64,000 bases of DNA from Epiperipatus broadwayi (Eukaryota > Animalia > Onychophora): contig JAQFVV010000006.1 of NCBI GenBank assembly GCA_028023455.1, positions 20,584,001 through 20,648,000 on the forward strand, in the 5' to 3' direction. How positions within the stretch are numbered: the first letter of the stretch is position 1; each line of letters starts with the position of its first letter. Below the pieces are notes generated by a model. That model did no database searches, had not been told where the DNA came from, and worked only from the letters and a program-made list of their open reading frames with translations. The position numbers and the translations under genes were made by a program. This document shows positions 1-63,430 of this stretch, piece by piece.

Positions 1-191
1 AAACTTTCCCAGTATTTAATCTATAGAAATAGAATCCTATCTGACCAACTTAATTTATTAATAAGTAATTTTATTTAATGTATTTCTTTTGTAAAATCAT
101 TTCCATTTAATTATTTATTTATTTTTGTTCTTTAAGTTTTTATTATGATTTCTGTTTTCATTAAACTAAATTATATAAATGTTAAATTTAA

Positions 192-644
192 GTCGGGCGT
201 GAATGGCTATATAGATTTGTAAAGTTATATTAGGGGAGGGTAATTTTAGATTATTCATTCCGTAGTTGAATTAGGTCAATGGATTGGATATATTGGTGTA
301 ATTAGTAGATGTAATACAAGATTTTCTATGGGCAGAATCGCTTTATACACCACACACTCCCATTTTGCCTATGGAAGGAATTATAAGACGGAGACCGCTG
401 TTCCTTTCTATGGAGTTTTTTTTTCTATTGCTTTTCTCATCAGATAGATGTACTATCCTATCTGGATGAGAGTCAATTTCTTTTTTTAATCTATATTTGT
501 GCTGTCGTATTCGTATTACATTGAATACATCGATATATCAGATGGATTGGCGTTGGTTTAACTGTGAACTTTTGGCCTAAGGTTAAATAAGGGATAAAAT
601 ATTTTCTTTTCAAATGCAATCTATGTAGTCTATTCATACTTGAC
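192..644 (+). ncRNA. Long G·U-rich hairpin RNA cassette A, copy 1 (about 125-bp imperfect rod plus branched apical domain)
   Basis: 5' arm 192-317 (GTCGGGCGTGAATGGCTATATAGAT...) pairs by hand with 3' arm 513-644 (...ATCTATGTAGTCTATTCATACTTGAC). Non-Watson-Crick pairs are mostly G·U on the + strand. Apical hairpins at 324-336/364-376 and 435-471. Confidence 0.75.
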
Positions 645-666
645 ACTCTAAATGCATTAAATTTAA

Positions 667-964
667 GTTGGGTATAGATGCTTGCATGGATTTGTTATCG
701 GTTAATTATGTTTTTGGTTTTCATATTTGATCAAAATATATAGACATTCGGTAAATAATGATACCTTACGGTGAGTATCTAAAATGTATTTATTCGGATG
801 TCTTTTAAGTTGTTGGTGTCAATGCGGCATCTTATGATGAATGCCATTGGGTTTCTTATAAATTTCCCTCTGCTAAATCCATCAATGACTTTATATTTTG
901 ATCGTTTATGTTTATTTTGAAATGTTTTTAACCATGTAATCTATGTAACCGATCTATACTCAAC
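667..964 (+). ncRNA. Long hairpin RNA cassette B, copy 1
   Basis: GTTGGGTATAGATGCTTGCATGGATT pairs with AATCTATGTAACCGATCTATACTCAAC. Perfect 12 bp at 729-740/892-903. Apical branches at 743-802 and 826-845 (loop CTTATGATGA). Confidence 0.75.
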
Positions 965-1135
965 AATATAAAACAAACTTTTATAAATCCATCTGTGTGA
1001 ACTTATAAAAATTAAAATGGAAATTAAAAATCTAAAATCAAAGTTAAAAATGTAAGTTAAATTTTAAAATGTAAAACTGATACTAAAATAATTTTAAATC
1101 TTATATATGTTTAAATAAATGTATGTGTGTAATTA

Positions 1136-1365
1136 CTGGCAGTGGCTTATTTTATTCTTTTTTTTAAAAAAAAAAAACTCTTAGATAAGAATTTATAAAA
1201 TATAAATCTCTGCTGTTCCACTGAGCTAGTGACAATGGGCTAACGATCAAAATCAAAATATATAAAATAGAAACAAAAAAAAATTTTTTTAAAACTTACA
1301 TATCTGCCTACTTTATAAATTTTCTAGGTTCTAAGTAGCCTAGTGGCGCCCTCGTAGTGTAGATA
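1136..1365 (+). other. Conserved downstream module C, copy 1 (possible branch point/3' splice site plus nested stem)
   Basis: Blocks CTGGCAGTGGCTT, CTGAGCTAGTGAC..TGGGCTAACGATC and TATCTGCCTACTTTATAAATTTTCTAG|G...CCTAG.TGGCGCCCT.GTAG are shared with 7542-7737. Confidence 0.55.
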
Positions 1366-1434
1366 GATTAGTCTCCCTTATTCCCTGATCGTTATAATAT
1401 ATATGTATATGAACTAGCTAAAGGAAAAATAAAA

Positions 1435-1587
1435 CATAATAAAAACACAGCATTACTTCGCTATAAAACTGCTTTTATATTTCAACCAGCAAACTGGTTT
1501 TTATCAGAAAGCTTTCTGATGAAAACCAGTCTGCTGGTTGAAATATAAAAGCAGTTTTATAGAGAAGTAATTCTGTGTTTTTATTAT
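1435..1587. mobile_element. Fold-back (head-to-head) PLE pLTR fragment with a hammerhead-like motif in each arm
   Basis: Near-perfect palindrome centred on AGAAAGCTTTCT. + arm reads CTGATGA-A-AACCAG-TCTG-CTGGTT-GAAA-TATAAAA-GCAG-TTTTATA (1512-1567). Position 16.1 is G rather than U, so it is probably inactive. Confidence 0.7.
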
Positions 1588-1608
1588 ATATATATAAACT
1601 TTTCACAG

Positions 1609-2377
1609 CAATTAATATTATATAATAATAGATTAACAACTCAACATTGGTTTGAAATACTCAATCTAAAGTGTAAGATGAAACTTTTGAAAAGGTATGA
1701 ACAGCTAGCTGTCTTATCTCTTTTATCTCAAGGACTTTGGAGGGAAAGTATGAAGATCTTAAATTGATGGCAATACTTCTTAAAGCTATATTTCAGATTG
1801 CTCTATATTATTTTAATTTCATTTGCAAAATTTTCCAATTTACAGCCTACCAAATAAATCAAATAATGAAATATGTAAATATAACTTTTCTCAGTGGTTA
1901 TGGCCCTAAGAAGTAATGTTATCAATTTAAGATTTTCATACTTTCACTCCAAAGTGCTTTAGATTGTCCTATATAAATTAATTTAGGTACAAGAGATAAG
2001 AAGGCAATTCTTATGGTTTTAAAAGTTTTATATTGTGCTTTGAATTGAGAATATTTTATGTGCTCAACAAACCAAAAATTTGAGTTGTTAATCTAATTAT
2101 TATACATATATAAAAAAAATAATGGCTAATGCTAAGTGAAATCTGCATAAAAATACATAAATCACAGATAATATTAAAACCCTGTGAGAAACAAAGTTTA
2201 AATTAATAGTACCATTCAAAAGACTACTAATGTGAATAGGTATAGATTACAACATACACAACAACTCTATGGCTTATAGATAAGAGTGTAATCCTTTTAT
2301 CTATACCATTAATGTAAATTTGATTCTTACAGGAAACACTGCTGGAATGTTTAATGTGGTCACCGATTTATTGGGAA
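1609..2377 (+). CDS. Three candidate phase-compatible exons (1609-1747, 1846-1874, 2333-2377) of an unidentified protein or pseudogene
   Basis: AG/GT-bounded segments join in frame without stops: QLILYNNRLTTQHWFEILNLKCKMKLLKRYEQLAVLSLLSQGLWRE-TYQINQIMKY-ETLLECLMWSPIYWE. No family recognised; could be chance. Confidence 0.25.
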
Positions 2378-3175
2378 GTAATCAAAAATAACACATGGTT
2401 TAACCCAAAAACTACTTCATGTAAATCATATAATCATGAAAACATTAAATATTATATGTATTCCATTTTAAAATTTATAAAATTTAACATGCATTCTGTT
2501 GAGATTGATTAAATTGGCCACACATTATTTGGAATGACAAATACTTTTCCTGAAAATCTTGAAGTTTTTTAATTTTTTTTCTGGACTTTATATTATGAGA
2601 TAAAGATAGAACACCATTAATCTGAAATCCCTGATTTTAGAGCTTTTAAGAATAGAGTTTTTACTCTCTCATTGTAAATTCAAATTCTACTAAGATATTA
2701 TATTTTATAAAAAATGTTTTTACTTAATTTGACCAATAATGCACTAAAAACCAAAAACATTTTCTTATTTAACCACAATTTTGACTTTTACCTATAATTT
2801 GAAATAAAAGCATGGGATATCCATAAATTAATGAATTCAATCATTAGTTAATTAATTCTTCTAATTTATAATTAATAAGGATTATTTTCTTTTGAGAAAA
2901 TCCATTAAACTGTAAATTCAATCTTTTTAGTGTTATCTTTAATCCTACTTTTTTATTTTTATCTGATATCTTATACATTTTCTGAAGCATTGTTTGCAAA
3001 AATAACATCATCCGTATATCCATTTACTATTATTATCTTAGTTTTCTGTTTAATTCACAATAGTTTTTAATATATAGGGTATATGAGCACAGATTTTCAC
3101 ATGACCCACCACTCTCCACACTATCTCATAACACTGATACACTTGAACACATATAGGTTGAAAAGATAAACAGTC

Positions 3176-3219
3176 ACCAATATACATATTTCATGCTAAG
3201 CCAGCTATCATCAGTTGGT
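3176..3219 (-). ncRNA. Minimal type I hammerhead ribozyme motif (family Y)
   Basis: Minus strand: ACCAA-CTGATGA-TAGCTGGCTTAGCAT-GAA-ATATGTAT-A-TTGGT. Stem III looks like a CpG-decayed ATACGTAT palindrome. Confidence 0.7.
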
Positions 3220-3613
3220 CCCGATTATCAACTCTACTTATGTACACAATAAGTATCAGATATATATTAAGATAGCCAATCTTCATACTTTAATGGACAG
3301 GCTTCAATCCACTCCACACTCCAACTCTTTAACCATCCATCTAATTAAAAATCTGATGATGGAATACTCAAAGGCCACTCTGAGGCTGAGTTTCTTATCA
3401 CACCCATCTTAACCTAAGGTTAATCTGACACCTCATGTACAGTACCTAATCCATTTAATACATATACAAGGGATGGTCAGACATCTCTACTATGTAATAA
3501 CTAAAACACACACAGGGTATATGAGCACAGGCTTTCAAACAACCCACCACTCTCCACACTATCTCATAACACTGATACACTTGAACACATATATGTTGAA
3601 AAGATAAATAATC

Positions 3614-3655
3614 ACCAATATGTATTTCATGCTAATCCAGCAATCATCAGTTGGT
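3614..3655 (-). ncRNA. Hammerhead ribozyme motif (family Y, second monomer)
   Basis: Minus strand: ACCAA-CTGATGA-TTGCTGGATTAGCAT-GAA-ATACAT-A-TTGGT. Confidence 0.65.
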
Positions 3656-3949
3656 CCAGATTATCATCTCTACACATATATGCTATAAGTGCTCAGATAT
3701 ATATTAAGATAGCCATACTTTAATGGACAGGCTTCAATCTACTCCACACTACAACTCTTCAACTGTCCATTCAATTGAAAATCTGATGATGGAATGCTCA
3801 AAGGTCATCCTGAGGCCAAGATTCTTGTCACACCCATGTTGACCTAAGGTCAATCTGACCCCTCATGTACAGGACATGTCTGTGCTCATATACCTTATAT
3901 ATTACATATATAAACACAGGTATATAATAAGTCTGTGTGTGTTTATTAA

Positions 3950-5700
3950 AATAGTTTTTGTAAAACTGCTATAAAATGTTTTGTAGATGTGGAATTGTCC
4001 TGTTATTCATCCTTCTCAATGTTAATCTTCTTAGTATCACTGTGTAATCTAATCATTGCAGATGCATTTTGATAAATATTTTTCAGAATATGATATTAGC
4101 TTGGATGTATATCTTGATGATCCAAAGTTTGCTTAGGAAATGATCAAAAAATCAAATACCTTTATTATAATCTACAAATCCAAAGCATAATGGCAACTCA
4201 CATTCATAAAAATTTTCTATAACTTCTCTCAATACTAGGATGCCATCCATTATGTTAAAGCCAATTTTAAATCCAGCCTGTTCTTTCAATTGATTTGAAC
4301 CCAAAGTTTATATGGAGATGAGTTGTACTTATATTGGTAAAGATTTTGAACAGAATTCCCAGAAGATTGATAGATCTGTAATTTCCAATATCTTCCTTAT
4401 CATCTTTCTTAAATATCAATATTACTATTGCCTTCTTCCAATCATCTGATATCTTTATCATTTAGATATTTAGTATATAATTTTGCCATTCTTCACTAGC
4501 TGATTTTAAGATATCAATAATAATTCTATCATATGCTTTGGTTTTTTTTTTTTTTTTTAGATTTAATTGAATATATCACTTCTTCACTTAAAATGCTTAA
4601 CAATTCACAATATGTTATAGTTGTAGTAGGTATTTTTTCTTAATTACTATTTAACTCTTCATAAATATATGAGGACATAGAAAGCCCTCAAAAGGACTTA
4701 TAGCTTTTCATTTTTATTGCATTTCAGTGCACATAAGATATATTGTACACATCTAAGGAAAATCTTGTATCTTTACAATTGTAATATTTCATGATGTATA
4801 CCTTTTTTTAAATAATAGTTGTTGTTTTTTTTTTTGCATAAATAAGTTTTCCACCACTACCAAGATTTTATTTTATTATTTTGGGTCTTTTATCCTCTTC
4901 TATCTTTTCTTGCCAATTGTACAATAACATTTTCTTATATCATTAACTCTTTTTCATATTTTTTTTTGCTTTATATATTCTCATCTCAGTAGAAAATTTA
5001 CTGGTAAATTGATGCTTTTTTATACTATCTTGCAGTTCTTAATAGAATATCACTTTTTTTGACTGATTGCACATCAAAGTAAAAAATTTAAAAGAATTAC
5101 TAAGTTCTAATTAAATTCACTGAAGTGGTTCTGAAGGTTACCATCTCTGAATACTGACTTTTTTAATAGTTTTTTTCTAGTTTGCATTAATACATATCTT
5201 ACATTTCATTAATTGATGACCACTTCCTGAGTTGAATCTATGAAATGTATTTTAATATTGAAATATATAAATTTTGTTTTTCAAAAGTATAATCCTTTTC
5301 TGCTCTATCTTTATTTGGATACTTTTATGATTATTTCCAATTAGTTTTTTTTTAAAAAAAAAATCAATATATTACAGGGTTTGTTTTCTTGTGAATTTCA
5401 CAATTCTGTGTCATCCTTTATTGTTTATCATCATAGTAAATTTACCCACTCATCCTCCAGTCTCTTACGAATTTTAGCATTTAAACTCTCATAGCAGTTT
5501 TAAAGTGTTGTTTGGTGTGATTAAAAATATTATATACTACATCCATATAGAATCCTTTACTGCTTCATCATAATGAAAACTTGTTGGAGCATAAATCTGA
5601 ACTGAAATAATTATTCTTGTCATTGTGTCTGGTATATCATCAATTTCTACTGTATTGTTTTACCACATTTTATTTATAGTATGCTCCAATATTTGTGCCT
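3950..5700 (-). mobile_element. Degenerate RTE-clade LINE fragment (APE endonuclease plus RT N-terminal part)
   Basis: Minus-strand remnants VQIYAPT..DEAV (about 5560-5620), WKKAIVILIFKKDDKEDIGNYRSINLL (ORF 4267-4461) and ILKNIYQNASAMIRLHSDTKKINIEKG. Many stops and frameshifts; ends approximate. Confidence 0.85.
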
Positions 5701-6088
5701 TTGTATTAAATGTAACGATATATAAATATGTCGTTACATTTATTTAAAATAAAAACTTAAAAGTTCGCAAATAAAAGTAAAAAACTAAACGCTAAAATTA
5801 AAATATTGTTAAACGTATATACATTCGCACAGATGCTAAACTTTAAAAATATTTTTTTCATAAACAACAAAAAAAAAGTATTTGAACGTATTTTTTTTAA
5901 TAAAAAAATACAAGATTGAAATATAAAAATATTTTAATAAAAAAATAACGTAAGTTAAAATAAAAACAGGTATTAATTAATTCCTGTAATCTATAAATGG
6001 AAATGATTGTTTATTAATTATCTAAAAGCTGTTTAATTAAAAAGTCAGATGAAAAGTTAGATAAGAGAAGAAAGAGATTTTAGCTTGA

Positions 6089-6204
6089 CCAATGGAAGCA
6101 AATAAAGGCCCGGACCATAACGAAAAAACAGAACAGTGACGTTTTTGTTCATGGAATCCATAGGAGGACTATAAAAAGAAAAAAATATTGAGTTCCAGTC
6201 AGTT
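6089..6204 (+). promoter_or_regulatory. Pol II core promoter: CCAAT, CRE-like TGACGT, TATA box and initiator
   Basis: CCAAT 6089-6093, TGACGT 6137-6142, TATAAAA 6170-6176, TCAGTT 6199-6204 (A+1 = 6201, TATA at -31). CpGs are locally retained. Confidence 0.7.
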
Positions 6205-6221
6205 TTTCCAACTTGATTTTG

Positions 6222-6261
6222 GTGAGTCTAGCGACAAGACGCACTTGTCGTCCTCACTCAC
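6222..6261 (+). other. 5' splice-site motif (G|GTGAGT) embedded in a stem-loop
   Basis: GTGAGT 6222-6227 pairs with ACTCAC 6256-6261. Inner stem CGACAAG 6232-6238 / CTTGTCG 6244-6250. A second donor, C|GTAAGC, lies at 6388. Confidence 0.5.
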
Positions 6262-6620
6262 TTATTTTAAAAATGCAAAGACTGTGATACCAGAACAGAA
6301 CCAGCTAATGCTACCTCCAAAATATCAGACCGGTCTTCCAGGAAAGTCTCCGTGGGAATTGCCAACGGGAACATGGACTCTTCTACCGTAAGCAATAGAA
6401 CTGAACGATTGTTAAAATCATAATATTAATTAAGAACTTTAAAGATTGATAAGTTAATTTAAATTTTATAAAAAGAACTTTTCTCTGACTTATGTGTCAA
6501 CTCAATTGATAATGTGTAATATTATATATGTTTGCGTTTGATAAAAAAAAAAAATCATTTCCATTTATTATTTATTTGTATTAATATTTATTGTTTAAAT
6601 TTTAAATGAGGAAATTTAAG

Positions 6621-6853
6621 GTTGGGTATAGATGTTGCATAGATTCGTTAGTGGTTGATTATGTTGTGGTTTTCACAGTCGATTAGAATATATAAGTCAA
6701 CGATATCACTGTGGTGTCTTATGATGAACACCAAAGGGGTCTCCTGTATTCCCTCAGCAATTGACGTTATCGATTGACTTTGTATTTTGATCGTTTGTGT
6801 TTAATTTTGAATGTTTTTGACTGTGGAATCTGTGCAGCCGATCTATATTCGAC
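6621..6853 (+). ncRNA. Long hairpin RNA cassette B, copy 2
   Basis: GTTGGGTATAGATGTTGCATAGATTC pairs with GAATCTGTGCAGCCGATCTATATTCGAC. Stem GGTGT/ACACC surrounds the invariant loop CTTATGATGA (6713-6732). It lacks the 743-802 branch of copy 1. Confidence 0.75.
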
Positions 6854-6912
6854 ATTATAAAACAAATTGGATAAAAATAATCTGTGCGAACGTATTTAAA
6901 TGTTAAATTTAA

Positions 6913-7389
6913 GTCGGGCGTGAATGGCTATATAGATTTGTAAAGTTATATTAAGGGAGGGTAATCTTAGGTTATTCATTTTGTAGTTGAATTGGTTCAA
7001 TGGATTGGATATATTTGTGTAATTAGTAGATGTAGTATGAGGTTCGCTACGGGCAGGATTATAGATATACGCCACACACCCTCTGTTTGCCTATGGATGG
7101 GTTTGTAAGTCAGCAGAAGACCGCAGTCCATTCCTATGGAGTTTTTTGTTTATTGTTCTACTTGCCAACAGATGTCACATTCCTGTTGGTGGAGAGTCAA
7201 TGTCTTCTCTATTTCTACTTATTGTTCAGATGTACGTTTCCTGACAGTATAGTTTTTTGTGTGATAGTATGAAAGAATGTATCAGATGGATTGGTGCCAG
7301 TTTGGTTGCGAAATTTGTTGCCTAAGGTTAAATCAGGGAAGAATATTTTCTTTTCAAATGCAGATCTATGTAGTCTATTCATACTTGAC
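6913..7389 (+). ncRNA. Long G·U-rich hairpin RNA cassette A, copy 2
   Basis: First 41 nt are identical to copy 1; last 48 nt are identical except one inserted G. TAATCTTAGG/CCTAAGGTTA and GTAGTTGAATTGG/CCAGTTTGGTTGC pair with G·U. Apical stem GCCAACAG/CTGTTGGT at 7164-7190. Confidence 0.75.
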
Positions 7390-7541
7390 CATCTAAATAA
7401 AATATTAAAACTCATTGAAATTTATGTAAATGTACAATTAAAGAGTAATCTAAAAAAAATCTAAAAAAATGTTAAACTTATTCCTCAAAATTTAAATGTT
7501 ATTTTATATGTGCGTAAATAAATATTTTTATGTGTTAATTT

Positions 7542-7737
7542 CTGGCAGTGGCTTTTATTCTCTTATATTTAAGATATAAAATTTATAGATTTTTATCTCT
7601 GCGTCTCCGCTGAGCTAGTGACTTGGGCTAACGATCGGAATATTTAAATAAAGTGGAATCTTAACAGCGCGTATCTGCCTACTTTATAAATTTTTCTAGG
7701 CTCAAATGCCTAGATGGCGCCCTGGTAGTTGCAGATA
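7542..7737 (+). other. Conserved downstream module C, copy 2
   Basis: Homologous to 1136-1365. GGCTAAC at 7626-7632, TTTTTCTAG|G at 7691-7700. Nested stems TATCTGC-CTAC...GTAG-GCAGATA and CTAGG/CCTAG. Confidence 0.55.
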
Positions 7738-7876
7738 TTGTTTTTGCAGTTAGATTCGATCTTCACTTTCATTTCGATCGTTATATAAAATACCTGCCAA
7801 CTTACCAAATCAATTGTCTCTTCAGTTTCTATTTTCATAAAATCCAATAGTTTCCATGTAATATTAGTTTTTTTCA

Positions 7877-8376
7877 NNNNNNNNNNNNNNNNNNNNNNNN
7901 NNNNNNNNNNNNNNNNNNNNNNNNNNNNNNNNNNNNNNNNNNNNNNNNNNNNNNNNNNNNNNNNNNNNNNNNNNNNNNNNNNNNNNNNNNNNNNNNNNNN
8001 NNNNNNNNNNNNNNNNNNNNNNNNNNNNNNNNNNNNNNNNNNNNNNNNNNNNNNNNNNNNNNNNNNNNNNNNNNNNNNNNNNNNNNNNNNNNNNNNNNNN
8101 NNNNNNNNNNNNNNNNNNNNNNNNNNNNNNNNNNNNNNNNNNNNNNNNNNNNNNNNNNNNNNNNNNNNNNNNNNNNNNNNNNNNNNNNNNNNNNNNNNNN
8201 NNNNNNNNNNNNNNNNNNNNNNNNNNNNNNNNNNNNNNNNNNNNNNNNNNNNNNNNNNNNNNNNNNNNNNNNNNNNNNNNNNNNNNNNNNNNNNNNNNNN
8301 NNNNNNNNNNNNNNNNNNNNNNNNNNNNNNNNNNNNNNNNNNNNNNNNNNNNNNNNNNNNNNNNNNNNNNNNNNNN
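7877..8376. other. Assembly gap (500 N)
   Basis: Run of n characters. Confidence 1.
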
Positions 8377-11842: not shown

Positions 11843-11919
11843 GCATTGGTGGTCAAGAGGTCAGCGCAACTGCCTTACGAGCAGTTGCCCAGGTTGCAGG
11901 CTCACATCCTGGCCGATGC
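11843..11919 (+). mobile_element. tRNA-Gly-derived SINE head / tRNA pseudogene
   Basis: GCATTGG...CCGATGC acceptor stem; ACTGC-CTTACGA-GCAGT anticodon arm; insertion in the T arm. The same family occurs at 63894-63988 and shares the ATGACAC 3' extension. Confidence 0.7.
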
Positions 11920-13146
11920 TATGACACTGGAAAAAAAATGTAGTCATTCATTAAAATTCAAACAACCATCAAAATAGTGTCTCAATATTCTTAGGGTACA
12001 GTGACTAAACTGATAAAAATTAAATATTATGATATGACCCACAAATGTAGATAAATGATGTAATCTTAAAGGAAATAAAATGAAGACAATCTTTTAAAAA
12101 CAATTAGTTCATATTTTATGTATATTTAAGAATGGCAATAAATAATTACAATAACAATAATATCATTTCATCACAGAATTTTTCTAGTTAATTTATGGAT
12201 TGTTTATAATAGTTTGTAAACCGTTAAATTTATTATTTCAATTATAATTACATTTTTGTTTTAATTAATGGACATTTTATTTATATTACATATATTTATA
12301 TAACTGAATAAAACGTTGCCTTACAGATTTAGACAATATTTTTAAACTAACATGTAAAAAAAATAATGAAATAACTCTTATTATTATTCTTAAAGTTAGA
12401 GGCCATTTATAATAGGATAAAAATGAGGGTATATATATTAATGCGTCACAGATTTGGGATTCATGTGTGATAAATCAGATATGACAAAGCTATAATAGAT
12501 TAATCTGGTCTAATTATGCCCTCCAAGTTACAGTGCCATTTATAGTAGAATAAATATGTACATATATTAATCTCTGTTATAGACCCAATGATTTCAGTAG
12601 CATTTGTAACAGAAAGAAAATGATCTCCGAAATTGGACATCGTTTGTAAATGAGTAAAATGTAACTCAAAAATAATACTAATTTTATATCATTGAATAAT
12701 ATTATTGTTCATAACAGAATAAATATAATATTCTAAACTAAATGAAAACCAATCAATAAATAATTATTTAGTACTTAATATAATCCTTTGTCTTATTACA
12801 TAACAATACAAAACAGTGATGATAATTTTTTAAATAGCATTCTGGATTTAAACAGCATTGAAATTAAATAGAAATCAAACAACATTATCATTTCAGATAT
12901 CCTAAATACAACCCTTACTTATGATAGATTAAAATGAAGCAATTAAATCAAATATCACTGTCTCAAAACAATGATATAAGCCTAAGATATATTTCACTTA
13001 TAATCGAATGAAATCAATAATAAATCATTAAACAACTAAGTTCAATATATATAAACATTACAAGCATAAAGCTAAACTAGTCAATATAAAATCAAAACTA
13101 CCCAAATCTAAAATTAAACCAGACCAGCATAAAAATAATATTAAAA

Positions 13147-13188
13147 CACAACCTAAGGTTTCACTGCTACAAGCAGACTTCTCAAGTG
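13147..13188 (-). ncRNA. Hammerhead-like motif, U3-A8 core variant (left arm)
   Basis: Reverse complement is identical to 13781-13822. Confidence 0.55.
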
Positions 13189-13780
13189 AAAAGAACTACA
13201 AAAACTACACAATATATATAATATTAAAAACTACCCACAAATCCATTCACTTCCCATCCACCCTTAATATTAAAAGAACTCTTAAATAAGTTAATTGCTT
13301 CAGAATAATAAATTTTCAATAATAAAGACTCTTTAATTCTTCTTTTGATTTCATTTCTCTCAAAGAAGACAATCTTAGCTTCATCAAAATCAATAGTGTG
13401 GCCTGTATCTTTTTCATGGACATACAAAGCAGAACTAAGATATCTATTTTTAACTGTACTTTTATGAACCTTTATTTGAGTTTAAATTAAAGAATAAAGG
13501 TTCATAAAAGTAGAGTTAAAAATAGATATCTTAGTTCTGCTTTGTATGTCCATGAAAAAGATACAGGCCACACTATTGATTTTGATGAAGCTAAGGTTGT
13601 CTTCTTTGAGACAAATGAAATCAAAAGAAGAATTAAAGAGTCTTTATTATTGAAAATTTATTATTCTGAAGCAATTAACTTATTTAAGAGTTCTTTTAAT
13701 ATTAAGGGTGAATGGGAAGTGAATGGATTTGTGGGTAGTTTTTAAAATTATATATATCATGTAGTTTTTGTAGTTCTTTT

Positions 13781-13822
13781 CACTTGAGAAGTCTGCTTGT
13801 AGCAGTGAAACCTTAGGTTGTG
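13781..13822 (+). ncRNA. Hammerhead-like motif, U3-A8 core variant (right arm)
   Basis: CAC-TTGAGAA-GTCTGC-TTGTA-GCAGT-GAA-ACCTTAGGT-T-GTG, located just downstream of the GIY-YIG stop codon. Confidence 0.55.
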
Positions 13823-13999
13823 TTTTAATATTATTTTTATGTTGGTCTGGTTTAATTTTAGATTTGGGATAGTTTTGATTATATATATATATATAATATA
13901 TATAAATCTTCGTTTTAACATATATATATATATATATACACCTAACTAATCAAACATTATTTATAAAAATATAAACTTATACAAAATTTAATGATGATC

Positions 14000-20914: not shown

Positions 20915-21262
20915 TGATGTGATGTGATGCACTGTGACTTCTCCTTATACAAAGTCAGGAATCTCTCAGCAACTATGTCCAGAGAAACCTGTTAACCACT
21001 TTACCTTCCTTTTTCATTTCCTACCCTAAGTTATCCCATAATCTGCTCCATCCCATTTCCACAACATAATCTTTGTCAACTCCATGGCCTTCATATCTAA
21101 ATCACCCTTATCTTTTTCCAAACCCAGCATAAAAACTAATAACCCACTTTCTATATAATCAGTTTGTTTATATTTATTTTTCCATAACTTCATTATTTGT
21201 ATCGGTTCTGCTTTCAAGCATTTACATTGAATAGTTTCACAGTGTGCCTTCAGTGGCTCCAT
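20915..21262 (-). mobile_element. Non-LTR retrotransposon 3' end with (CACAT)n tail
   Basis: Homologous to 61263-61725; encodes a degenerate HxxxxCKCLKAE.IQIMKL tail; GATGTGATGTGATG repeat on the + strand. Confidence 0.75.
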
Positions 21263-25030: not shown

Positions 25031-25077
25031 ATAATAAATCCTAAAATGCCATAATCACAAACCTTCAGGCAAATAAT

Positions 25078-25697
25078 CCATTTGGTACTTGTGACTTTTG
25101 ACCCATGTGGATGGGCTTACACACTGTGACCAGCACCACCAAGCAAGTAGCTTTGCTGCCAGCCAGCTGGTGGAATGTTCCTGTGCTTACACATTGTGAA
25201 TAGCACCACCTTTTGGCTGGAATTTGCAATGCTGCATTTGGGACCCCTACTCTAAGTATTTTTGTGGTTGACCCTGACCAGCACCTCTGGTGGCCACATG
25301 GGTCAAAAGTCACAAGTACCATCTATCTAGTTTTTCCATGTGTAACTGTGGAGAAACCGCCATGTAGTGGGCTAGAATCTTGGTAGTCGCTGTTAGCAGA
25401 TGACACATAAGCTAGATGTGTTTATGGCAATCAGCGCCACCTAGGTTCTTGGTATCTGCTGGTAGCAGACGATGTAAGAAAATGGGCTTATGCACTGCTA
25501 CCAGTGCCACCAAGCAAGCAGCTTGGCTGCCAGCCAGCTGGTGGAATGTTCCTGTGCTTACACATTGTGAACAGCACCACCTTTTGGCTGGAATTTGCAA
25601 TTCTGCATTTGGGGCCCCTACTCTAAGTATTTCTGTGGTTGACCCCAACCAGCGCCTCTGGTGGCCACATGGGTCAAAAGTCACAAGTACCAACCAT
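25078..25697 (+). repeat. GC-richer element in partial tandem (about 25130-25322 and 25340-25697) with a 5' inverted copy of its 3' end
   Basis: Two copies of CACCAAGCAAG...GGGTCAAAAGTCACAAGTACCA. Inverted TGGTACTTGTGACTTTTGACCCATGTGG at about 25083-25110. The longer unit has TGTAAC...GTCACA LTR-like ends. No hammerhead found. Confidence 0.75.
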
Positions 25698-27330
25698 CTA
25701 AATTTAATTTAATTTCATCTTATCTATTTGTCTTAACAATTAATCATAGTATTCATAGTTTTTAACTTCTAATGCATTGCTATTCTTTATTTTTCCCTAT
25801 ATAGTTATATAGTTTGATGCAATGGAAGAGGCATATTTCAGAACTGAAGTGTAGATGTTATTTCTGCAGCATATACTTTTTACTTAAACCATTTAATTAA
25901 TTTTAACTCTTCTTGAAAATCTGTTGGCATTTCCTACTTTCTTGCTTTTAATTTTGATCTCTATTTTGTAAAATTGCTGTAAAAAGTTTTGAAGATAGAA
26001 TAACTCTGCTATATACTCATTAATTTCAATATTATTTGTATCATTATATAATGATCATTGCATTTTAATAGATATTCATCAGAATATAGTGTCTGGGGTC
26101 AATGTTTTGATATTCCAAAGCTTTAATCCCCACAGAATCAAAATGACTTTCCATAATTTACAAAACCCAAGCATAGTCTAATTATTGCATTCTTTTGTAA
26201 CTTTCCTAATACTTGTTAATACATTGTACCACAACTATCTCTAAATACAGTTTAATCCTTTTCTTAATCTGGATATAATGATCTCTATAAGCAGATTATA
26301 ATGAACATGTTCATGTATATTTGTATTCATGTATTTGTATTATGTTTGTTATAGTTCTGAAGAAGATTGGGACAATCGAAACTGTCAATAATGGATAAGT
26401 AAAAAAGCATTGTAAAAAGTAATAAAGAATATAGATGATATTAATGTTATAACTGATAGAAGACTTATAGATCTGCAGTTTTTAATGTATTCCTTTTTAT
26501 CTTACTTAAAAACAAAAATATTTATAACTTTCCAATTTCATCAACTATATTTTAATCTTGTGAATAAAAACATCTGAAAAAGATCTTTATTTATATGGTT
26601 AAATATATGTGGTAAAATTTAAGATATTACATGTGGAAAAAAAAAAAGACAAAAGGTATTAAACATCCCATGTGGTTTTTGTTTAATAATAATAGACATA
26701 TTATTTATTTAAAGTTTAAAGTACATTTATCCAGTTAGAAATAGAATAATTTCTAGCTTAATAAACAATTAGTAATAATTATTAAGTGCTTTATATGATA
26801 CAATGGTATATAATTGTGAGGTGAGATAAATTTGGAGCCTTTAGATTTAATTGTAATAAAAACATCACTACATAATATTTCAATCAATTGGAGTATGATT
26901 ATCATTTAAATATTTAGTATATAGGTTTGACAACAATTTGTTTTATTTATAGAAATTAAAACAAGTATGGAAATTCTTATATTTAGGAAATTTTACTATA
27001 TATTTTAAATTATTAAAACATATTAATAATTTAATAAACATAAAAATACAATTACCAAACAAATAAATAATTAATCATATTATTAAATAAATGTAAAATA
27101 ATTTTAATCTATATTGCAAGTTTCAAAAATTCATGAAAATATGTTTTGAATCCAAAAATTATTTCATTAGGTTATTGGTTATTAAATTTTCTGCTGCTTA
27201 TATTAAATTGATTCCATCACTTTTATATATATTTTCAATATAATTTAAAATATATTACACAAATAACACACCCACATATTCATGCTATTTCTTTAGCATA
27301 CGATTATAATCAAAATGTAAATGACTAATG

Positions 27331-35859: not shown

Positions 35860-36725
35860 AATTTAACAAATTTATTATTATTTATATAAGGCTATAACCT
35901 TAGTACAAGTGCCTTGTGTGCTTAATTTTATTACAAGAGAGACCTCTACAAATCTCAACACAAGATTCAACATTATAAAGATAACAGTGGCCAATTTTCT
36001 TCAACCTACTTTTCTAATTATATAGGCAAATCTAAAGCATTTTAATTTGGGAGTGTGAAGCTAATAAATTCTTCACTGATTAAGTCCATTATTTCTGTTA
36101 CACATTAATGTTTGTGAAATCTTTTGATTTACAAGTCAATATTCAGATCTTAAATTTTGAAATATTTTGAATCAATTTAAAGTTGTAAATATTAATTCTT
36201 GTTGGCCACTGTTATCTTTATAAAGTCGAAACTTGTGTTAAGATTTGTAGAGGTCTCTCTTGTAATAAAATTAAGCACCCAAGGTGCATGTATGTCCTGA
36301 AATTGAGCTTAACAAGAATTAATATTTACAATTTTAAATTGATTCAAAATATTTTGAAATTTAAGATCTGAATATTGACTCGTAAATCGAAAGATTTCCC
36401 AAATGTTAATGTGTAACAGAAATAGTAGACTTAATCAGTGAAGAATTTATTAGCTTCACGCTCCCAAATCAAAATGCCTTAGATTTGAAGAATTTATTAG
36501 CTTCACGCTCCCAAATCAAAATGCCTTAGATTTTCCTATATAATTAGAAAAATAGGTTGAAGATAAGAGTTAGACACTCTTATTTTTATAAAGTCAAATC
36601 TTGTGTTAAGATTTGTAGAGGTATCTCTTGTGATAAAATTAAGCACACAAGGTGCATGTTCTAAGGTTATAGCCTTATATAAATATTATGTGCTTATATT
36701 GTGCTTAACAAGAAGTAATATTTAT
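35860..36725. repeat. About 350-nt LTR/pLTR-like unit present as one + copy and an inverted, partially tandem multimer
   Basis: 35860-36200 recurs inverted at about 36310-36700, with extra partial copies at 36200-36300 and 36700-36725 and an internal duplication of about 45 nt near 36440-36530. A diverged relative lies at 54230-54450. Confidence 0.8.
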
Positions 36726-40967: not shown

Positions 40968-41038
40968 TGCATTAACTGGGAAGCAAACCCAGGCCAGCTG
41001 CTTGGAAGGCAGCTTTTCTAACCATTGGACACCAATGC
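40968..41038 (-). pseudogene. tRNA-Gly(UCC) pseudogene / SINE head
   Basis: Minus strand: GCATTGG-TG-TCCAATGGTTAGAAAA-GCTGC-CTTCCAA-GCAGC-TGGC-CTGGG-TTTGCTT-CCCAG-TTAATGC-A. The B box is degraded and CpGs have decayed relative to the arthropod tRNA-Gly(TCC) pattern. Confidence 0.8.
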
Positions 41039-43030: not shown

Positions 43031-43607
43031 AATGAGTATTATTTTCTTGTGAATATGACTAGAATAATATCTATTTTTAATGAAACTATCATTTTAATCT
43101 TGAAGTATACTAACAAATGATTGGCCCAACAATTGGCACTTCTTAGTGTTCATGTAATATAGACTTGTGTGATATTAGGACTCCTAACTATAAGGAATTT
43201 TATAAATTGTTAATCAATTTTATCATTATATATACATGTTAAATGAAATTAAGTAGACCAAGTACTCTTTTGATGTGTGTGTGTGTGCCCTAATCATGAT
43301 TGTTCTATTAAGGATCTATGAAACACATTTTTGTTAATTTGAATACTGTAATAAAATTTCTCATTGGTTCATTATATATTCATTTTGGGTGAATATGCTT
43401 CATAGATTCTTAATAGAACAACCATGAGAATGATGGAAACATGTCAAAAGTATACTTAGTTTATTTAATTTCATTTTTAACATATTTAATCTCTTTTGCC
43501 ATATTATTAATAATAATGACAGAGAATAAGAATATTATATATATTTCACTTGATGGTTATTCTGTTTTCAACCATTCTAATAACAATTCAGTAGGAATAT
43601 ATATATA

Positions 43608-43889
43608 TATGTCAACAGATGGCGTTCTACCAAAAACACCGTCAAGCATATGTTTACATAAATGTCAGAGCATGCATTCACTATCTCTAACTTTAATTCC
43701 ACTTTCAGATCATGATTTCAAGCTATTTGCTATCATCAGTGAAATTCCTGTCTTTCACTGATGATAGCAAATAGCTTGAAATCATGATCTGAAAGTGGAA
43801 TTAAAGTTAGAAATAGTGAATGCATGCTCTGACGTTTATGTAAACATACGCTTGACGGTGTTTTTGGTAGAACGCCATCTGTTGACATA
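43608..43889. mobile_element. Young fold-back PLE pLTR (arms of about 135 bp) with a hammerhead in each arm
   Basis: Near-perfect inverted repeat. + motif at 43752-43795: CTTTCA-CTGATGA-T-AGC-AAATA-GCT-T-GAA-ATCATGAT-C-TGAAAG. Mirror copy at 43702-43744. Confidence 0.85.
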
Positions 43890-44882
43890 AATACAAGCGT
43901 TAGCAAGTTTTTAACTTGTTTTTTGTTTTTCATATATATATAATTAATGTTATAAATTACTTAATACTTTTTAATCACTTTTTTATATATAAAATATAGG
44001 AAATTTTATTCTGTAATTTGGTTACAACTCATATGATAAGATTAAAAATAGGATACATTAAATGGTATTCAAAGAAGAAAAAAGTTCAATGATGACATAT
44101 CCTGCATTATATAACCTAAGATGACTACAGTGATCCATAGGATTAATGGCAAGGACCTGGGGTTTGGTATCTTGGAGATAGATGACAAAGCTTTTTAATC
44201 ACTTTACTGATAAAATTATATCGAATTTAAACAAATTAAGATGCATTATAAATTATTTATACAAAATAACAAACCATACAAATACAAAGTATACAAAGAA
44301 GAAGATTTTCTGCAATAAATAAATACCAGAACTGAGGATGCAGCATTATAACAATGTTAAAATCACACTGCACTAAGATATTAACATGCCATGTCTAGAA
44401 TGTTTTTGTGATTCATGGATTGCTGTGTAAAATTATCATGAATAAAATAAAACAAAAATTAACAGTCATGCTTTTACAATATTATATAAGTAATTTTTTT
44501 TTCCAAAATGTTTTAACTTCTTCTCACTTATTCAGAGATGTAGAGAATAAAAATTATACGTATGAATTTCCATCAAATAAGCTTTATGTATAGTGTGAAA
44601 ATTAATACAAGAATACTAACAGAGTGAGAGATATACCTGCAATATGGAGCTACATACCAATAACAAAAGACAAAACGAATTCAAGAAAGTATACACATCT
44701 GTATTGCATGAAATAATTTATTTTGAAATAAAATAGGGAAATAAATAAAAACATACTAATGTATTTATCACTCAGACCAGAAAACTAAATTGACATAATT
44801 TAATATTTTGCAAAATAAACAGATAGTGTCAAAATAAAGAGTCATAGATCACATGACCCTATCTCTTAAGCTTGTAAGTTAT

Positions 44883-55537: not shown

Positions 55538-56194
55538 GAGTTTGAAAAAAATCAGTTATAAAAACTAAATATTTTATTGAAAAAAGGTGCAATCTTAAAT
55601 TTTTTTATTTTAATTTATTAATTATGTAAATCATTAACAAAAGTTCAATCAAAAATAAATATATTATCCATATGCAGAAATTTTCATGTGAATAAATACG
55701 AAAAGACAGAGGAAGTATAGATAAGATGAAAAGCAATACCTATAGTAGTTACTTAATCTTTAGTTTTTTTCCTAGTTATATTTGTAACTGAACCACTTAA
55801 AAGTCAAATTCAGTTTCTAGTTACCAGCATCTAATATATGTTTTCCCAAAGGACTAAAGGAATCATATAAAAAAAAAACCCATTTTAGCATCGAATTTCC
55901 TAAAGAAACAAAACTAAACCGGTATTGAAAAACTCTTCAAGTTAGCATTTTTCAGTTGCAATAATGAAAAAATTATTTCTCAATAGTTTGAATTATAAAA
56001 TGATTTACTTATTCCCAAACTTAGTTCAGCGATTAACATCTAGAAATGTAGTTGTTGGTAAATAATGAATATAAGTCTGTAGAAATATCTTACAACTTTT
56101 CTACTGTTGTTGTACAAAATAAAATGTGGTCCTGAGTTGATAGCTTGTTTTCTAGCCAAAAAGCTGTGGAAAAATAAAAATCAGTCAATGAATT

Positions 56195-56445
56195 AAAATG
56201 AAAATGATATTATACCATTTACAACTTTCTTAAACACTTTATCAATACTCTTTATTTATATCAAAACTAACAGTTTCAGCTATCCTGCAATCATCATCAG
56301 AGCTCTTGTTAATTCTATTGTTAAGAGCTCTGATGATGACTGCAGGACAGTTGAAACTGTTAGGTTTGATATAAATAAAGAATATTGATAAAATGTTTAA
56401 GAAAGTTGTAAATGGTATGATATGAAGTAGAAATCAATACATAGG
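56195..56445. mobile_element. Fold-back pLTR with hammerhead-like cores in both arms
   Basis: CTGATGA-T-GACTG-CAGGA-CAGTT-GAAA-CTGTTAG at 56330-56363; inverted copy at about 56268-56312. Confidence 0.75.
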
Positions 56446-61262: not shown

Positions 61263-61725
61263 GATGTGATGATGTGATGTGATGTACTGTGGCTTCTCCT
61301 TAAACAAAGTCAAGAATATCTTAGCAATTATGCCAGATAAACCTGTTAGCCACTTTAATTTCCATTCCCCACTCTAAGTTTTCCCATATTCTGCTCCATC
61401 CCATTTCCACAACATAATCTTTGTCAACTCTATGGCCTTTATATCTAAATCCCCCTTATCTTTTCGCAAACCCAGCATAAAAATAACTCACTTTCTGTAT
61501 TGTCACTTTGTTCATACCTATTCTCTCATAACTTCATTATCTGCACCCTTTCTGCTTTCAAGCATTTACATTCAATCAACAGATGCCTAATATTTTCTAT
61601 ACCTTCCTTACACAATTTGCACACTAAATCACCCATAATTTTCCATTTACATGTATATTCTTTTGTTGCTAAAGATCCCGTTTGAACCTTAAACAATAAA
61701 CTGCTTTCCTTACTATTATCATAAA
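61263..61725 (-). mobile_element. Non-LTR retrotransposon 3' end with a CX2CX8HX4C motif and (CACAT)n tail
   Basis: SLLFKVQTGSLATKEY...VCKLCKEGIENIRHLLIECKCLKAER (ORF 61526-61753); GATGTGATGTGATG tail. Confidence 0.85.
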
Positions 61726-61738
61726 TTAATATGTGATG

Positions 61739-63430
61739 TACACATGTTGTCACCTATAGTTTCCTTATAGTGTATAAGTAACTAAATAAATAAAACAATT
61801 AAAGGTCATATGTTTAATAAAAAATATTTATGGTTTTGAAGGAATCTGAAATAAGTGAACTATTTATTTATTAAGCTTTAAAAAATTAAATATTTTGTTT
61901 AAATTATTATTGAGCAATAACAATGCCTTATTAGAATTAGAAAAAAAAAATCCATGATATCAAGTCATTGTTTAAAAAAGAAAAAGACTGCATTTTGTGT
62001 TTTCATAGTTACAAAAACAATTTTAGCAATAAGACACATACTTTCTTTTGCTCAAAAATTTGTGTTTATTTTACCTTACTTTTATAAATATATTCAGAAC
62101 ATATAGTTAAAGAAATATATACTATGGGCAAAAAAATCTAGAGGAGGCATAAACTCTGTTTTCATTTGGTATCTTTATGATTAAAATGAAATGGATATCA
62201 CAAACACTATGCTGACCACCATAGAGCTAAGATAATTGAATTCATCTTGGATTATAATATCAACAGGAATAATAATTGGACATCATCTAAGAATTAAAAT
62301 TGCTTATGGATCCATATGTTTGTGTTTTTGCTAGCAAAAAGATACCAAATAAAATGAATAATGAAATATCAACTGAAGTCATGTACATGCAAATTGTGGT
62401 AACAGATAATAATAAAAACCTTTGAAATTAATACTGTCAGATAAGTTTCATTTAAAAAAAGAAAAGAAATGATTAAAAAAGCATAATGATAATTTTAATG
62501 ATAAACATTTATTAAAGTTATTTTTTATTAATAATTTTTATTAATATAACTTCCTTAGCATTCATTGTCATTTAAACAATATGAGAAATATACATTTTTT
62601 AAAAATAGTAGCAATATTAAAACTTTTATTATTTTGCTTAAATAGTCTATCATTAACCCTTTTATGACTGTATGCTTTATAATTTAAATGCATATCATAT
62701 CTATTAATTGCAATCTAAAAAAAAGAAGAGCTAAATTATAAAACATAGATTAGATTGCAGTTGGTAAATTAAAATTAAAATTTTTATTTTATTCACCTCA
62801 ATGAATTAATACGTATTTCAATAAATTTATATTATTATTATTAACCTAAGTCCTTTGATTTATCTATTGCAACAACAATTCAAAATTATTTTAGTATGCT
62901 ATTTATTTTACAATTAAGATAATTCATTGTACATTCTATGTTATAGTTTATCATTTAATAAGTCATAATTTATTAAATTGTATCTTTTTTTCCAAGCAAA
63001 ATACTCATTCTCTGGGCCATTGCCACCTTACAAAATTTATAAGTCCATTGTAAATATAAATTTAAATACCATACAACCAGTTGTGAATTAACATATTTAT
63101 TCATCTATTTTAGTTATATATTTTAATTGCCTATGTACAATATTTATATAATATATTTTAGAGTGCCCAAATATCCAATATATAAGTGGAGAAACCACTT
63201 GATTTATGATTTAAGTATTACATGTGGTTTCCAAATCTATGAAACACTTATAGGACAGCTAGCCATGATTACCCAAATATATAAGCCATTCAATGAACCA
63301 CATTTATTTTATCTTTAATTTTGGTAGTCTTTATTAGTTTTTCTTTACATTGGGCTCATCCAATGAGAAAATATTATTTATGAGATAATGTTGCCTCATT
63401 AACATTGTTCATATAGGGTTTAGAATAATT
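61739..63430 (+). repeat. Segmental duplicate, copy 2
   Basis: Collinear with 57425-58940, with small insertions. Confidence 0.85.

Follow-up and report, generated by a model that had tools for sequence, protein, structure and literature searches.

The two hairpin-bearing regions found in the window (the whole stretch of 64,000 nucleotides of Epiperipatus broadwayi DNA that was analyzed) are two copies of one mobile element of ~2.1 kb, which is non-coding and present in many copies (Table 1). Each copy carries two cassettes, A and B, and the folding and pairing data support these cassettes as strand-specific structures at the RNA level, with pairing kept through ~23% sequence divergence. The element is probably the LTR of an LTR retrotransposon, present here as solo LTRs that are read on the + strand, with the hairpins acting in cis in the sense RNA. 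The hairpins are thus most likely the cis-acting RNA structure of a parasite, and not a host small-RNA gene.

Table 1. Features of the repeat unit and of its hairpin cassettes, in window positions.
Feature	Position	Strand	Basis or details
Copy 1 of unit (5' part off window edge)	1–1396	+	
Copy 2 of unit, complete, 2,075 bp	5711–7785	+	Depth edges, contig left-flank breaks, empty-site contigs
Target-site duplication TAAA, left copy	5707–5710	.	Sequence reading and empty-site contigs
Target-site duplication TAAA, right copy	7786–7789	.	Sequence reading and contigs
5' terminal short inverted repeat TGTAACGAT, starts TG	5711–5719	+	Complementary to 7777–7785 bar one base
3' terminal short inverted repeat ATCGTTATA	7777–7785	+	Same end in copy 1 at 1388–1396
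U3-like upstream part, A/T-rich	5711–6150	+	Contig depth by run; CCAAT at 6089–6093
Head segment	6551–6603	+	Common to 93–140 of copy 1
Cassette A, copy 1	172–653 (hairpin 192–644)	+	Fold, arm alignment
Cassette A, copy 2	6893–7398 (hairpin 6913–7389)	+	Basal stem identical to that of copy 1
Cassette B, copy 1	631–1012 (hairpin ~667–966)	+	Apical stem 826–830/841–845, loop 831–840
Cassette B, copy 2	6605–6901 (hairpin ~6621–6853)	+	Apical stem 6713–6717/6728–6732, loop 6718–6727
Tail, copy 1	1005–1396	+	AATAAA at 1113, then GT-rich run
Tail, copy 2	7399–7785	+	Variable AT-rich stretch, AATAAA at 7517 and GT-rich stretch, most conserved part 7592–7783

A bounded, dispersed repeat

The boundaries of the unit were read from contigs of four public runs with two organism labels, which were built from 31-letter words, without direction, the runs being only guessed to be RNA. 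Hundreds of variants of the 2,075-bp unit are found among these contigs. Their summed depth, a mixture of copy number, conservation and expression, is 0 to the left of ~5672 and ~20 beyond 7784, with sharp edges at 5711 and 7785. Contigs that match from 5711 rightwards carry unrelated sequence on their left side, and represent other copies with different left flanks. Empty-site contigs join 5705 to 7807 via ~22 other letters, which is consistent with the insertion of the unit together with 4 further bp; the chance probability of a 4-bp TAAA match in AT-rich DNA is ~1–5%. The termini, TGTAACGAT and ATCGTTATA, are inverted repeats of each other over 9 nt except for one mismatch, with a TG start and, in both copies, a TA end, and the homology between copy 1 and copy 2 ends directly after ATCGTTATA. 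A single contig shows a head-to-tail junction (7782 to 5710). The host sequence of copy 2 is an old, decayed LINE, with a reverse transcriptase (RT) fragment at 4152–4461 on the - strand in the left flank, and the 4.3 kb separating the copies contain a minus-strand LINE and foldback repeats.

The bounded insertion, its target-site duplication, the empty sites and the hundreds of variants thus define a dispersed repeat and not a duplicated host locus. The first-pass annotation had proposed such a locus, with a polycistronic array of ncRNAs and no recognisable transposable element (TE) signature. By contrast, the cassettes are internal modules of the 2,075-bp repeat, and its duplication, termini, empty sites and variants make them part of a TE, an outcome that the annotation itself had listed as contradicting its proposal.

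The two copies (n = 2 full copies compared) align at 77% between 172–653 and 6893–7398, at 74–79% between 631–742 and 819–1012 and the corresponding 6585–6694 and 6706–6901, and at 68% between 1005–1365 and 7397–7737. Two paralogous regions with A and B in each had indeed been recognized, and the alignments (68–79%) agree with this; what had been missed is that the module order is swapped, from head-A-B-tail in copy 1 to head-B-A-tail in copy 2. In addition, one contig omits B exactly (6569 to 6897). No ORF of at least 40 amino acids is common to both copies, in line with the earlier description of cassettes without an intact ORF. The retention of CpG in CpG-depleted DNA is likewise borne out: the observed/expected (O/E) ratio is 0.79 in A1, 1.06 in B1, 1.08 in B2, 0.52 in A2 and 1.05 in the whole unit, that is 0.5–1.1 in the element versus ~0.2 around it (0.20 in the rest of the window, and 0.06 in 1400–5700).

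Hairpin modules that fold on one strand

The cassettes fold strongly on the + strand, with z values of -5.96 (A1), -4.56 (A2), -7.40 (B1) and -4.55 (B2), versus -0.78, +1.32, -3.76 and -2.35, respectively, on the - strand. The long imperfect + strand rods of the first-pass annotation are therefore reproduced (z of -4.6 to -7.4, versus +1.3 to -3.8 on the other strand). The remainder of the unit has z values of -1 to -2.7 that are nearly alike on the two strands. Because strong structure and strand asymmetry occur only in the cassettes, a mutational strand bias across the unit is excluded. The cassettes are rich in G and T on the + strand, and no consistent skew towards G/T is seen in the parts of the unit outside them (GC skew of -0.04 to 0.13, AT skew of -0.09 to +0.23).

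A and B are paralogous modules: both are hairpins with the basal stem in common, and they differ in their apical domains. The basal-stem sequence is common to both (copy 1: z of 5.8 and 4.9), and consists of 28 pairs in A, including six G·U and one C·A, and of 25 pairs in B, with three G·U in copy 1 and five in copy 2, near the hand count of ~26 bp with 3–5 G·U and 0–1 A·C made previously. The rods span 270–490 nt, are broken every few pairs, and contain G·U at 13–24% of their pairs. Cassette A is branched, and the fold of its apical domain differs between the copies. Cassette B of copy 1 has an additional side helix of ~55 nt that is absent from copy 2; the 10-nt apical loop of B, CUUAUGAUGA, is invariant, and the stem of this loop has two compensatory pairs. 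The conserved parts of the cassettes are the basal stem and the apical loop, not a duplex register. On sequence inspection, the cassettes have neither termini nor target-site duplications of their own. A search of the cassettes against Rfam 15, miRNA families included, gave no match, whether at gathering score or with E up to 1, in agreement with the previously noted lack of a known-ncRNA signature, and the ribozyme models (hammerhead, twister, HDV-like and others) had no match at E ≤ 1 in 1–7876.

The minimum free energy structures of the + strand contain 108 G·U pairs and two A·C 1x1 mismatches. When the arms are aligned as DNA in a strand-neutral way, the G·T:A·C counts are 35:4 in B and 33:4 in the basal rods of cassette A (68:8 in total), versus 58:50 in 17 control inverted repeats located elsewhere in the window (Fisher p = 1.4e-7). 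G·U pairs pile up because RNA helices tolerate G·U and do not tolerate A·C. As a consequence of this accumulation, the DNA is barely an inverted repeat any more, to the point that the arms of cassette A are hardly detectable as one, and folding is lost in the antisense RNA.

Differences between copy 1 and copy 2 point in the same direction. Single transitions at Watson-Crick pairs retain pairing in 43 cases and break it in 15, with a ratio of 21:1 for cassette B alone and of 22:14, which is not significant, for cassette A alone; among the double changes, pairing is retained in 21 of 32. Half-compensatory differences in B comprise 11 A/G and 9 C/U changes, so that A-to-I editing alone is not their source. 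Of the window-specific departures from the family majority, 5 of 6 preserve pairing, compared with only 3 of 9 minority variants. Selection can thus be seen acting on the repeat family as a whole, which is the pattern of a TE and not that of a host gene. The earlier idea of structured RNAs under purifying selection thus holds for constraint at the RNA level, and is not supported as regards a host locus. The strand-specific G·U excess, read here with an internal control from the same window, is a reliable mark of RNA-level constraint, and such a signal may belong to a TE instead of a host gene.

Assignment of the element

The LTR-like traits of the unit include the TG start, the 9-nt terminal inverted repeat, the 4-bp duplication, the lack of ORFs and the head-to-tail junction contig. 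A further trait is the upstream part, which is nearly missing from run X5 and present in run X7, under one organism label: depth at 5768–5959 versus 6056–6439 is 2–6 versus 1,400–4,700 in X5 (RNA-labelled), and 560–880 versus 200–785 in X7. In LTR profiles, R and U5 are more conserved than U3, the ends carry short inverted repeats, AATAAA precedes a GT-rich stretch, and long R regions hold stem-loops (PMC3601003); 4-bp duplications are found in animal non-autonomous LTR elements with small-RNA-derived LTR modules (PMC10886601). The tail is the best-conserved part of the unit and has the highest depth (26,000–44,000, in X5 and X6). It is closed by a stem of 9 bp (7629–7637/7776–7784) with one compensatory change, and also contains a conserved small hairpin and an exposed GGCGCC palindrome (7716–7721). 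A TATAAAA at 6170–6176 lies just 3' of the U3-like part; both this motif and AATAAA carry little weight, because they are frequent on both strands of the AT-rich unit, and motifs such as CCAAT are common in this DNA as well.

The fold and its restriction to one strand, the pairing kept from copy to copy, and the boundaries, target-site duplication and high copy number of the element are demonstrated directly. That the element is an LTR, where U3, R and U5 meet, which way it is transcribed and what the hairpins do at the molecular level are inferred. The AT-rich U3-like part would reach up to about 6100–6200, to be followed by a long R-like region of modular hairpins and by a strongly conserved U5-like tail that would end the element, closing on itself via the terminal stem. 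A and B would operate in cis within the sense RNA of the element, plausibly as binding sites for its own Gag or RT, as aids to dimerisation or strand transfer, or as stability or export elements. The number and order of the modules may be altered when the short repeat in front of each of them (TAAATG..TTAAATTTAAG) serves as a site of recombination or template switching. Some observations argue against an LTR: the 3' end is TA, the canonical one being CA; the TATA motif is ~460 nt from the 5' end, which results in an unusually long R-U5 of ~1.6 kb; and the 3'-ward increase in depth is also compatible with 5'-truncated non-LTR copies. Within the window, no full-length element with paired LTRs, primer-binding site (PBS), polypurine tract (PPT) or gag-pol was seen, and a PBS follows neither copy 1 nor copy 2.

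The same hairpin repeat might belong to another class, as a non-autonomous non-LTR or Penelope-like retroposon, or as a satellite-like, partial-tandem unit, with the tail serving as RT recognition site. The 10- to 100-fold climb in depth toward the 3' tail in X5 and X6, the head-to-tail junction, and the small hairpin and closing stem of the tail would suit this assignment, which we nonetheless consider rather unlikely. The unit has no ribozyme match at E ≤ 1 and no poly(A) or simple-repeat tail; its 5' boundary at 5711 is sharp and common to other copies, and its 5' part is roughly as abundant as the middle in X7 and X8. Moreover, the missing upstream part in X5 fits poorly with an element transcribed from its first base, and the TG start, terminal inverted repeat and 4-bp duplication suit an integrase better.

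It is improbable that the cassettes form a host locus of the hpRNA or long pri-miRNA type, or TE-borne hairpins that are mainly processed by Dicer or Drosha to small RNAs. On the + strand they form long, imperfect duplexes that include G·U pairs, as would be anticipated for such precursors, and the family has a high summed depth in RNA-labelled runs, whose RNA status is guessed. Engineered G:U hairpins, furthermore, still trigger RNAi while evading the methylation of a DNA inverted repeat (PMC9263138), which could also explain the retained CpGs. However, this is no host locus: the insertion is bounded, has a target-site duplication and exists in hundreds of variants. In addition, no miRNA family matches the cassettes in Rfam, the rods are interrupted and A is branched, and conservation follows the basal stem and apical loop instead of a duplex register.

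Similarly doubtful is a broader proposal, in which the cassettes would be an undescribed class of modular rod-shaped RNA elements that move as units by template switching at the flanking repeat, possibly between host elements. Additionally or alternatively, they might undergo small-RNA processing or be bound by a dedicated dsRNA-binding protein, the AUGAUGA-containing invariant loop and the fixed G·U of the basal stem acting as a recognition code and the G·U design shielding the DNA from methylation triggered by inverted repeats, which would account for the retained CpGs. The normal CpG content of the element family, compared with the loss in other repeats, raises the question of whether the G·U-disguised hairpins, or the family, escape germ-line methylation. 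Finally, DNA foldback or MITE-type repeats, with a G·T excess due to strand-biased mutation or editing (ADAR or deaminase marks copied into DNA) and no selection on the RNA fold, would fit a window full of foldback repeats and the G/T-rich cassette strand, but are very improbable given the unbiased control repeats, the lack of consistent G/T skew or marked structure in other unit parts, the full compensatory pairs, and cassettes without termini or duplications of their own.

If the LTR assignment is correct, the R-like region of this family is unusually long and is built of tandem hairpin modules that shuffle between copies; the family would then be useful for studying the recognition, dimerisation and protection of retroelement RNA. 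It also presents an annotation hazard, as such modules are prone to be miscalled as hpRNA or miRNA precursors.

Comparison with known systems

Retroviruses have structured R/U5 leaders, such as the TAR and poly(A) hairpins of HIV-1, the Rex-responsive element of HTLV, and packaging or dimerisation stem-loops. If the unit is an LTR, the cassettes resemble these retroviral and LTR leaders in having sense-strand helices within an LTR or leader, compensatory maintenance and, putatively, action in cis, and the residual conservation of long R regions is owed to stem-loops (PMC3601003). By contrast, the rods of this element are far larger (270–490 nt, with the G·U share given above), and occur as two paralogous tandem modules of variable order and number, with no coding partner or PBS seen.

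Cassandra, Helenus and Ajax, which the present unit would resemble, are LTR elements without coding capacity whose LTRs hold a structured-RNA module, and the animal members of this group, known from molluscs and other invertebrates, have 4-bp target-site duplications (PMC10886601). Their LTRs are at most ~320 bp long, compared with 2.1 kb for the present unit, and the modules in them originate from tRNA or 5S rRNA and bear Pol III promoters (PMC10886601), whereas the modules described here match no known RNA family. A further difference is that neither a second LTR nor a PBS or PPT was seen around the unit in the window.

Retrozymes and viroid-like rod RNAs are also rod-like, non-coding and repeat-borne in this size range of 270–490 nt, and differ from the cassettes, which contain no known self-cleaving ribozyme and have no permuted or monomeric tandem copies. 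Drosophila-type hpRNAs come from single host loci, and their long duplexes are near-perfect and related to target genes. With these endo-siRNA loci the cassettes share an extended inverted repeat whose fold forms in RNA; in contrast to them, they reside in a multi-copy mobile element and form interrupted rods.

Fold and pairing of the hairpin cassettes

Hairpin cassettes A and B occur in both copies of a repeat, namely copy 1, which ends at 1396, and the complete copy 2. Each cassette was folded on both strands and scored against dinucleotide shuffles, and the + strand has the lower z-score in all four (A1, A2, B1 and B2; table), in line with the strand specificity proposed in the first-pass annotation. 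The minimum-energy structures of the + strand contain 108 G·U pairs versus 2 A·C single mismatches. Because the folding program is biased towards G·U, the arms were also compared with strand-neutral scoring, the 5′ arm being aligned to the reverse complement of the 3′ arm. In B the resulting G·T:A·C ratio is 35:4, and the basal rods of A have 33:4. Seventeen further inverted repeats in the window, counted in the same way as a control for neutral decay, give 58:50 with a strong skew in none; the cassettes differ from them significantly (Fisher p 1.4e-7; single copies alone, 2e-4 and 1e-5). The claimed excess of G·U over A·C, unlike the neutral decay of inverted repeats, is borne out, and the hairpin observation as a whole holds with an internal control. 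The remainder of the repeat unit has z-scores of −1 to −2.7, without strong structure or strand asymmetry, and a unit-wide mutational strand bias therefore fails as an explanation.

The structure predicted on one copy was scored on the other. Single transitions at Watson–Crick pairs stay paired as G·U at 43 positions and are broken as A·C at 15 (p 3e-4), and double changes keep a canonical pair in 21/32 cases, versus 6/16 by chance (p 0.001). B gives a very clear signal (kept:broken 21:1), A only a weak one (22:14). In A, the apical domain does not fold alike in the two copies; the basal stem of 28 pairs is the same in both, six G·U positions included. In the 5-bp apical stem of B, two pairs are changed on both sides below an invariant 10-nt loop, CUUAUGAUGA, which bears out a companion note to the annotation. 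Half-compensatory differences in B comprise 11 A/G and 9 C/U changes; since the two types are about equally frequent, A-to-I editing by ADAR is insufficient as the only source of the G·U pairs and was ruled out as such.

The apical loop of B (6718–6727; 831–840 in copy 1) includes AUGAUGA, the consensus of the snoRNA C box. The loop is not accompanied by an evident D box or terminal C/D stem, and the likeness may be a coincidence.

A bounded mobile unit with two copies in the window

Contigs of four public runs, which carry two organism labels, were placed on 5000–7876, where 347–869 short contigs per run match at 95–100% identity. Their summed depth is hundreds to 59,000 within 5711–7783, 0 to the left of ~5672 and ~20 to the right of 7784. 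In some contigs the match begins at 5711 and extends to the right, the sequence on the left being unrelated, and several others join 5705 straight to 7807 with ~22 other letters. The latter contigs equal the flanks minus the unit and one TAAA, and hence represent empty sites. Copy 2 is flanked by a decayed LINE on the minus strand, which has a reverse-transcriptase fragment at 4152–4461. A single contig joins 7782 to 5710, a rare head-to-tail junction. The homology between the two copies stops precisely at the 3′ motif ATCGTTATA. Copy 1 may be 5′-truncated at 93; it continues past the left edge of the window, and weak similarity to copy 2 is found upstream of 93 as far as that edge.

The two regions are paralogous as claimed, with four matched segments (68–79% identity where given). 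The interpretation as a duplicated host locus does not stand, since the unit is a repeat flanked by a target-site duplication (TSD), with empty sites and high depth. Both regions are copies of a mobile element, and the cassettes lie inside it, not in a host locus for hairpin or other non-coding RNA. A reading of the copies as the paired LTRs (5′ and 3′) of a single element was rejected because other LINE copies have the two flanks of copy 2 joined without a break and the interval between the copies contains the minus-strand LINE.

No ORF of at least 40 aa is common to both copies, and a comparison of two spurious ORFs across cassette A with the protein collection gave no candidates. Rfam, hammerhead included, returned nothing on the unit at E≤1; at a relaxed threshold it gave weak miRNA-like matches only, all within an unrelated palindrome at 1436–1587. 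Exact pattern searches with conserved 22- and 23-mers found no further copies in metagenome or viral contigs.

The order of the modules differs, being head-A-B-tail in copy 1 and head-B-A-tail in copy 2. The basal-stem sequence of A recurs in B, in the 5′ as well as the 3′ arm; copy 1 gives alignment z-scores of 5.8 and 4.9, and the similarity is weaker in copy 2. The same short repeat precedes each of them. One contig skips B precisely (6569 to 6897), which is the copy-1 arrangement. A and B are paralogous modules that underwent duplication and reshuffling. The reshuffling could have proceeded by recombination or by reverse-transcriptase template switching at the flanking repeat.

Among the other features of the window, the palindrome at 1436–1587 has CTGATGA...GAAA-like motifs at its centre. 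Its Rfam matches are weak and miRNA-like, on both strands, with no hammerhead at E≤1, and it is probably a foldback repeat. The mismatches G·T and A·C are balanced in the palindrome at 13101–13868 and in the other long inverted repeats, unlike in the cassettes.

Coordinates of the repeat unit, its modules and other features of the window
Feature	Position	Matching position	Strand	Details
Repeat unit (copy 2)	5711–7785			2,075 bp; 4-bp TSD TAAA; termini TGTAACGAT...ATCGTTATA
Short head match	93–140	6551–6603		
Cassette A match	172–653	6893–7398		77% identity
Cassette B match	631–742 + 819–1012	6585–6694 + 6706–6901		74–79%
Tail match	1005–1365	7397–7737		68%
A1 (cassette A, copy 1)	192–644			fold z: + strand −5.96, − strand −0.78
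A2 (cassette A, copy 2)	6913–7389			fold z: + strand −4.56, − strand +1.32
B1 (cassette B, copy 1)	~667–966			fold z: + strand −7.40, − strand −3.76
B2 (cassette B, copy 2)	~6621–6853			fold z: + strand −4.55, − strand −2.35
Near-perfect palindrome	1436–1587			76-nt arms, 95% complementary, no spacer
Foldback-type element	3068–3904			26-nt terminal inverted repeats, 96% complementary; two tandem ~435-bp internal segment copies, 84–93% identical
Decayed LINE reverse-transcriptase/zf-RVT-like fragment	4152–4461		−	part of the LINE copy hosting copy 2
Assembly gap	7877–8376			500 N; 91 bp past the end of copy 2; right-hand context of the host LINE absent
tRNA-Val(UAC) call	11843–11920		+	ARAGORN only
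Large young palindrome	13101–13868			376-nt arms, 98% complementary, 16-nt spacer
Decayed LINE reverse-transcriptase/zf-RVT-like fragment	21026–21262		−	
Locally GC-richer stretch	25065–25712			34% GC; two tandem ORF-like stretches (~85% similar) on − strand; overlapping + strand ORF
Long inverted repeats	35876–36688, 43604–43893, 56188–56442			
tRNA-Gly(UCC) gene	40968–41038		−	Rfam 42 bits
Decayed LINE reverse-transcriptase/zf-RVT-like fragment	61526–61753		−	closest protein-atlas clusters mainly molluscan

Constraint and CpG content

Where the window copy differs from the contig majority, pairing is kept at 5 of 6 paired sites, and minority contig variants keep it in 3 of 9, both being small numbers. 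The pattern agrees with active lineages under constraint whose inserted copies afterwards decay neutrally, that is, selection at the level of the family and not of the locus.

The window is eukaryotic DNA of 26% GC, with a CpG O/E of 0.24 overall and 0.06 in 1400–5700. Within the unit the value is 0.5–1.1 versus ~0.2 outside, which confirms that CpGs are retained in a CpG-depleted genome. The copies have 8 CpGs in common, and a further 17 are turned over, reading TG or CA in one copy, with TG exceeding CA on the + strand. The high O/E combined with this turnover implies that the family is either young at each insertion site or poorly methylated. In plants, engineered G:U hairpins avoid the methylation of a DNA inverted repeat (PMC9263138), to which the retained CpGs compare by analogy only.

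Class of the element

Judged by its sequence organization, the unit is most likely an LTR. A unit that starts with TG, has a short terminal inverted repeat and a 4-bp TSD and codes for no protein fits this class best, and so does its internal layout. Library types were guessed and contigs are directionless in all runs. In X5, taken as RNA, depth is 2–6 at 5768–5959 and 1,400–4,700 from 6056 on. In X7, whose organism label is that of X5, the upstream part is no less abundant than the remainder (560–880 vs 200–785), and the contrast between the two runs suggests that X5 molecules start inside the unit. CCAAT is found at 6089 and TATAAAA at 6170. Promoter and poly(A) motifs abound in DNA as AT-rich as this; those of the TATA and poly(A) type are too common on both strands and were dismissed as evidence of orientation. 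The tail is the best-conserved part of the unit and has, in both copies, AATAAA followed by a GT-rich run. A 9-bp stem, in which one change is compensatory, closes its final ~150 nt. The 3′ end of the unit is TA, not CA, and an R-U5 of ~1.6 kb, as implied here, would be unusually long. The LTR assignment has a serious rival in a retroposon of the non-LTR or Penelope type, or in a satellite-like repeat.

The motif TGGCGCCC (7715–7722; 1352–1359 in copy 1) was considered as a tRNA-Lys primer-binding site (PBS) and rejected: only 8–9 nt fit, it lies 63 nt inside the element end, and it is present in both copies. It was taken as belonging to the tail, where an absorbed PBS is one possible identity and an exposed GGCGCC palindrome another. 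This palindromic hexamer is unpaired in the conserved tail (7716–7721; 1353–1358), with a small hairpin on one side and the closing stem on the other, and is similar to palindromes of the dimerisation type or to the first bases of a tRNA-Lys-type PBS. On its minus strand the tail has a tRNA-like A-box (~1221–1233), which was discarded because A-box and CCA-like end are in the wrong order for a tRNA and ARAGORN makes no call there.

Overall, the cassettes are predicted to act in cis as hairpin modules on the sense strand of a mobile element, which is most likely an LTR. Among animals, there are non-coding LTR elements that make 4-bp duplications and whose LTRs contain structured-RNA modules (PMC10886601). 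Profiles of LTRs show short inverted repeats, TATA, AATAAA with a GT-rich stretch, stronger conservation of R and U5 than of U3, and long R regions that contain stem-loops (PMC3601003). Counterparts of the inverted repeats, TATA, AATAAA with a GT-rich run and conserved end of these published profiles also occur in the unit, the two motifs being frequent in its AT-rich DNA.
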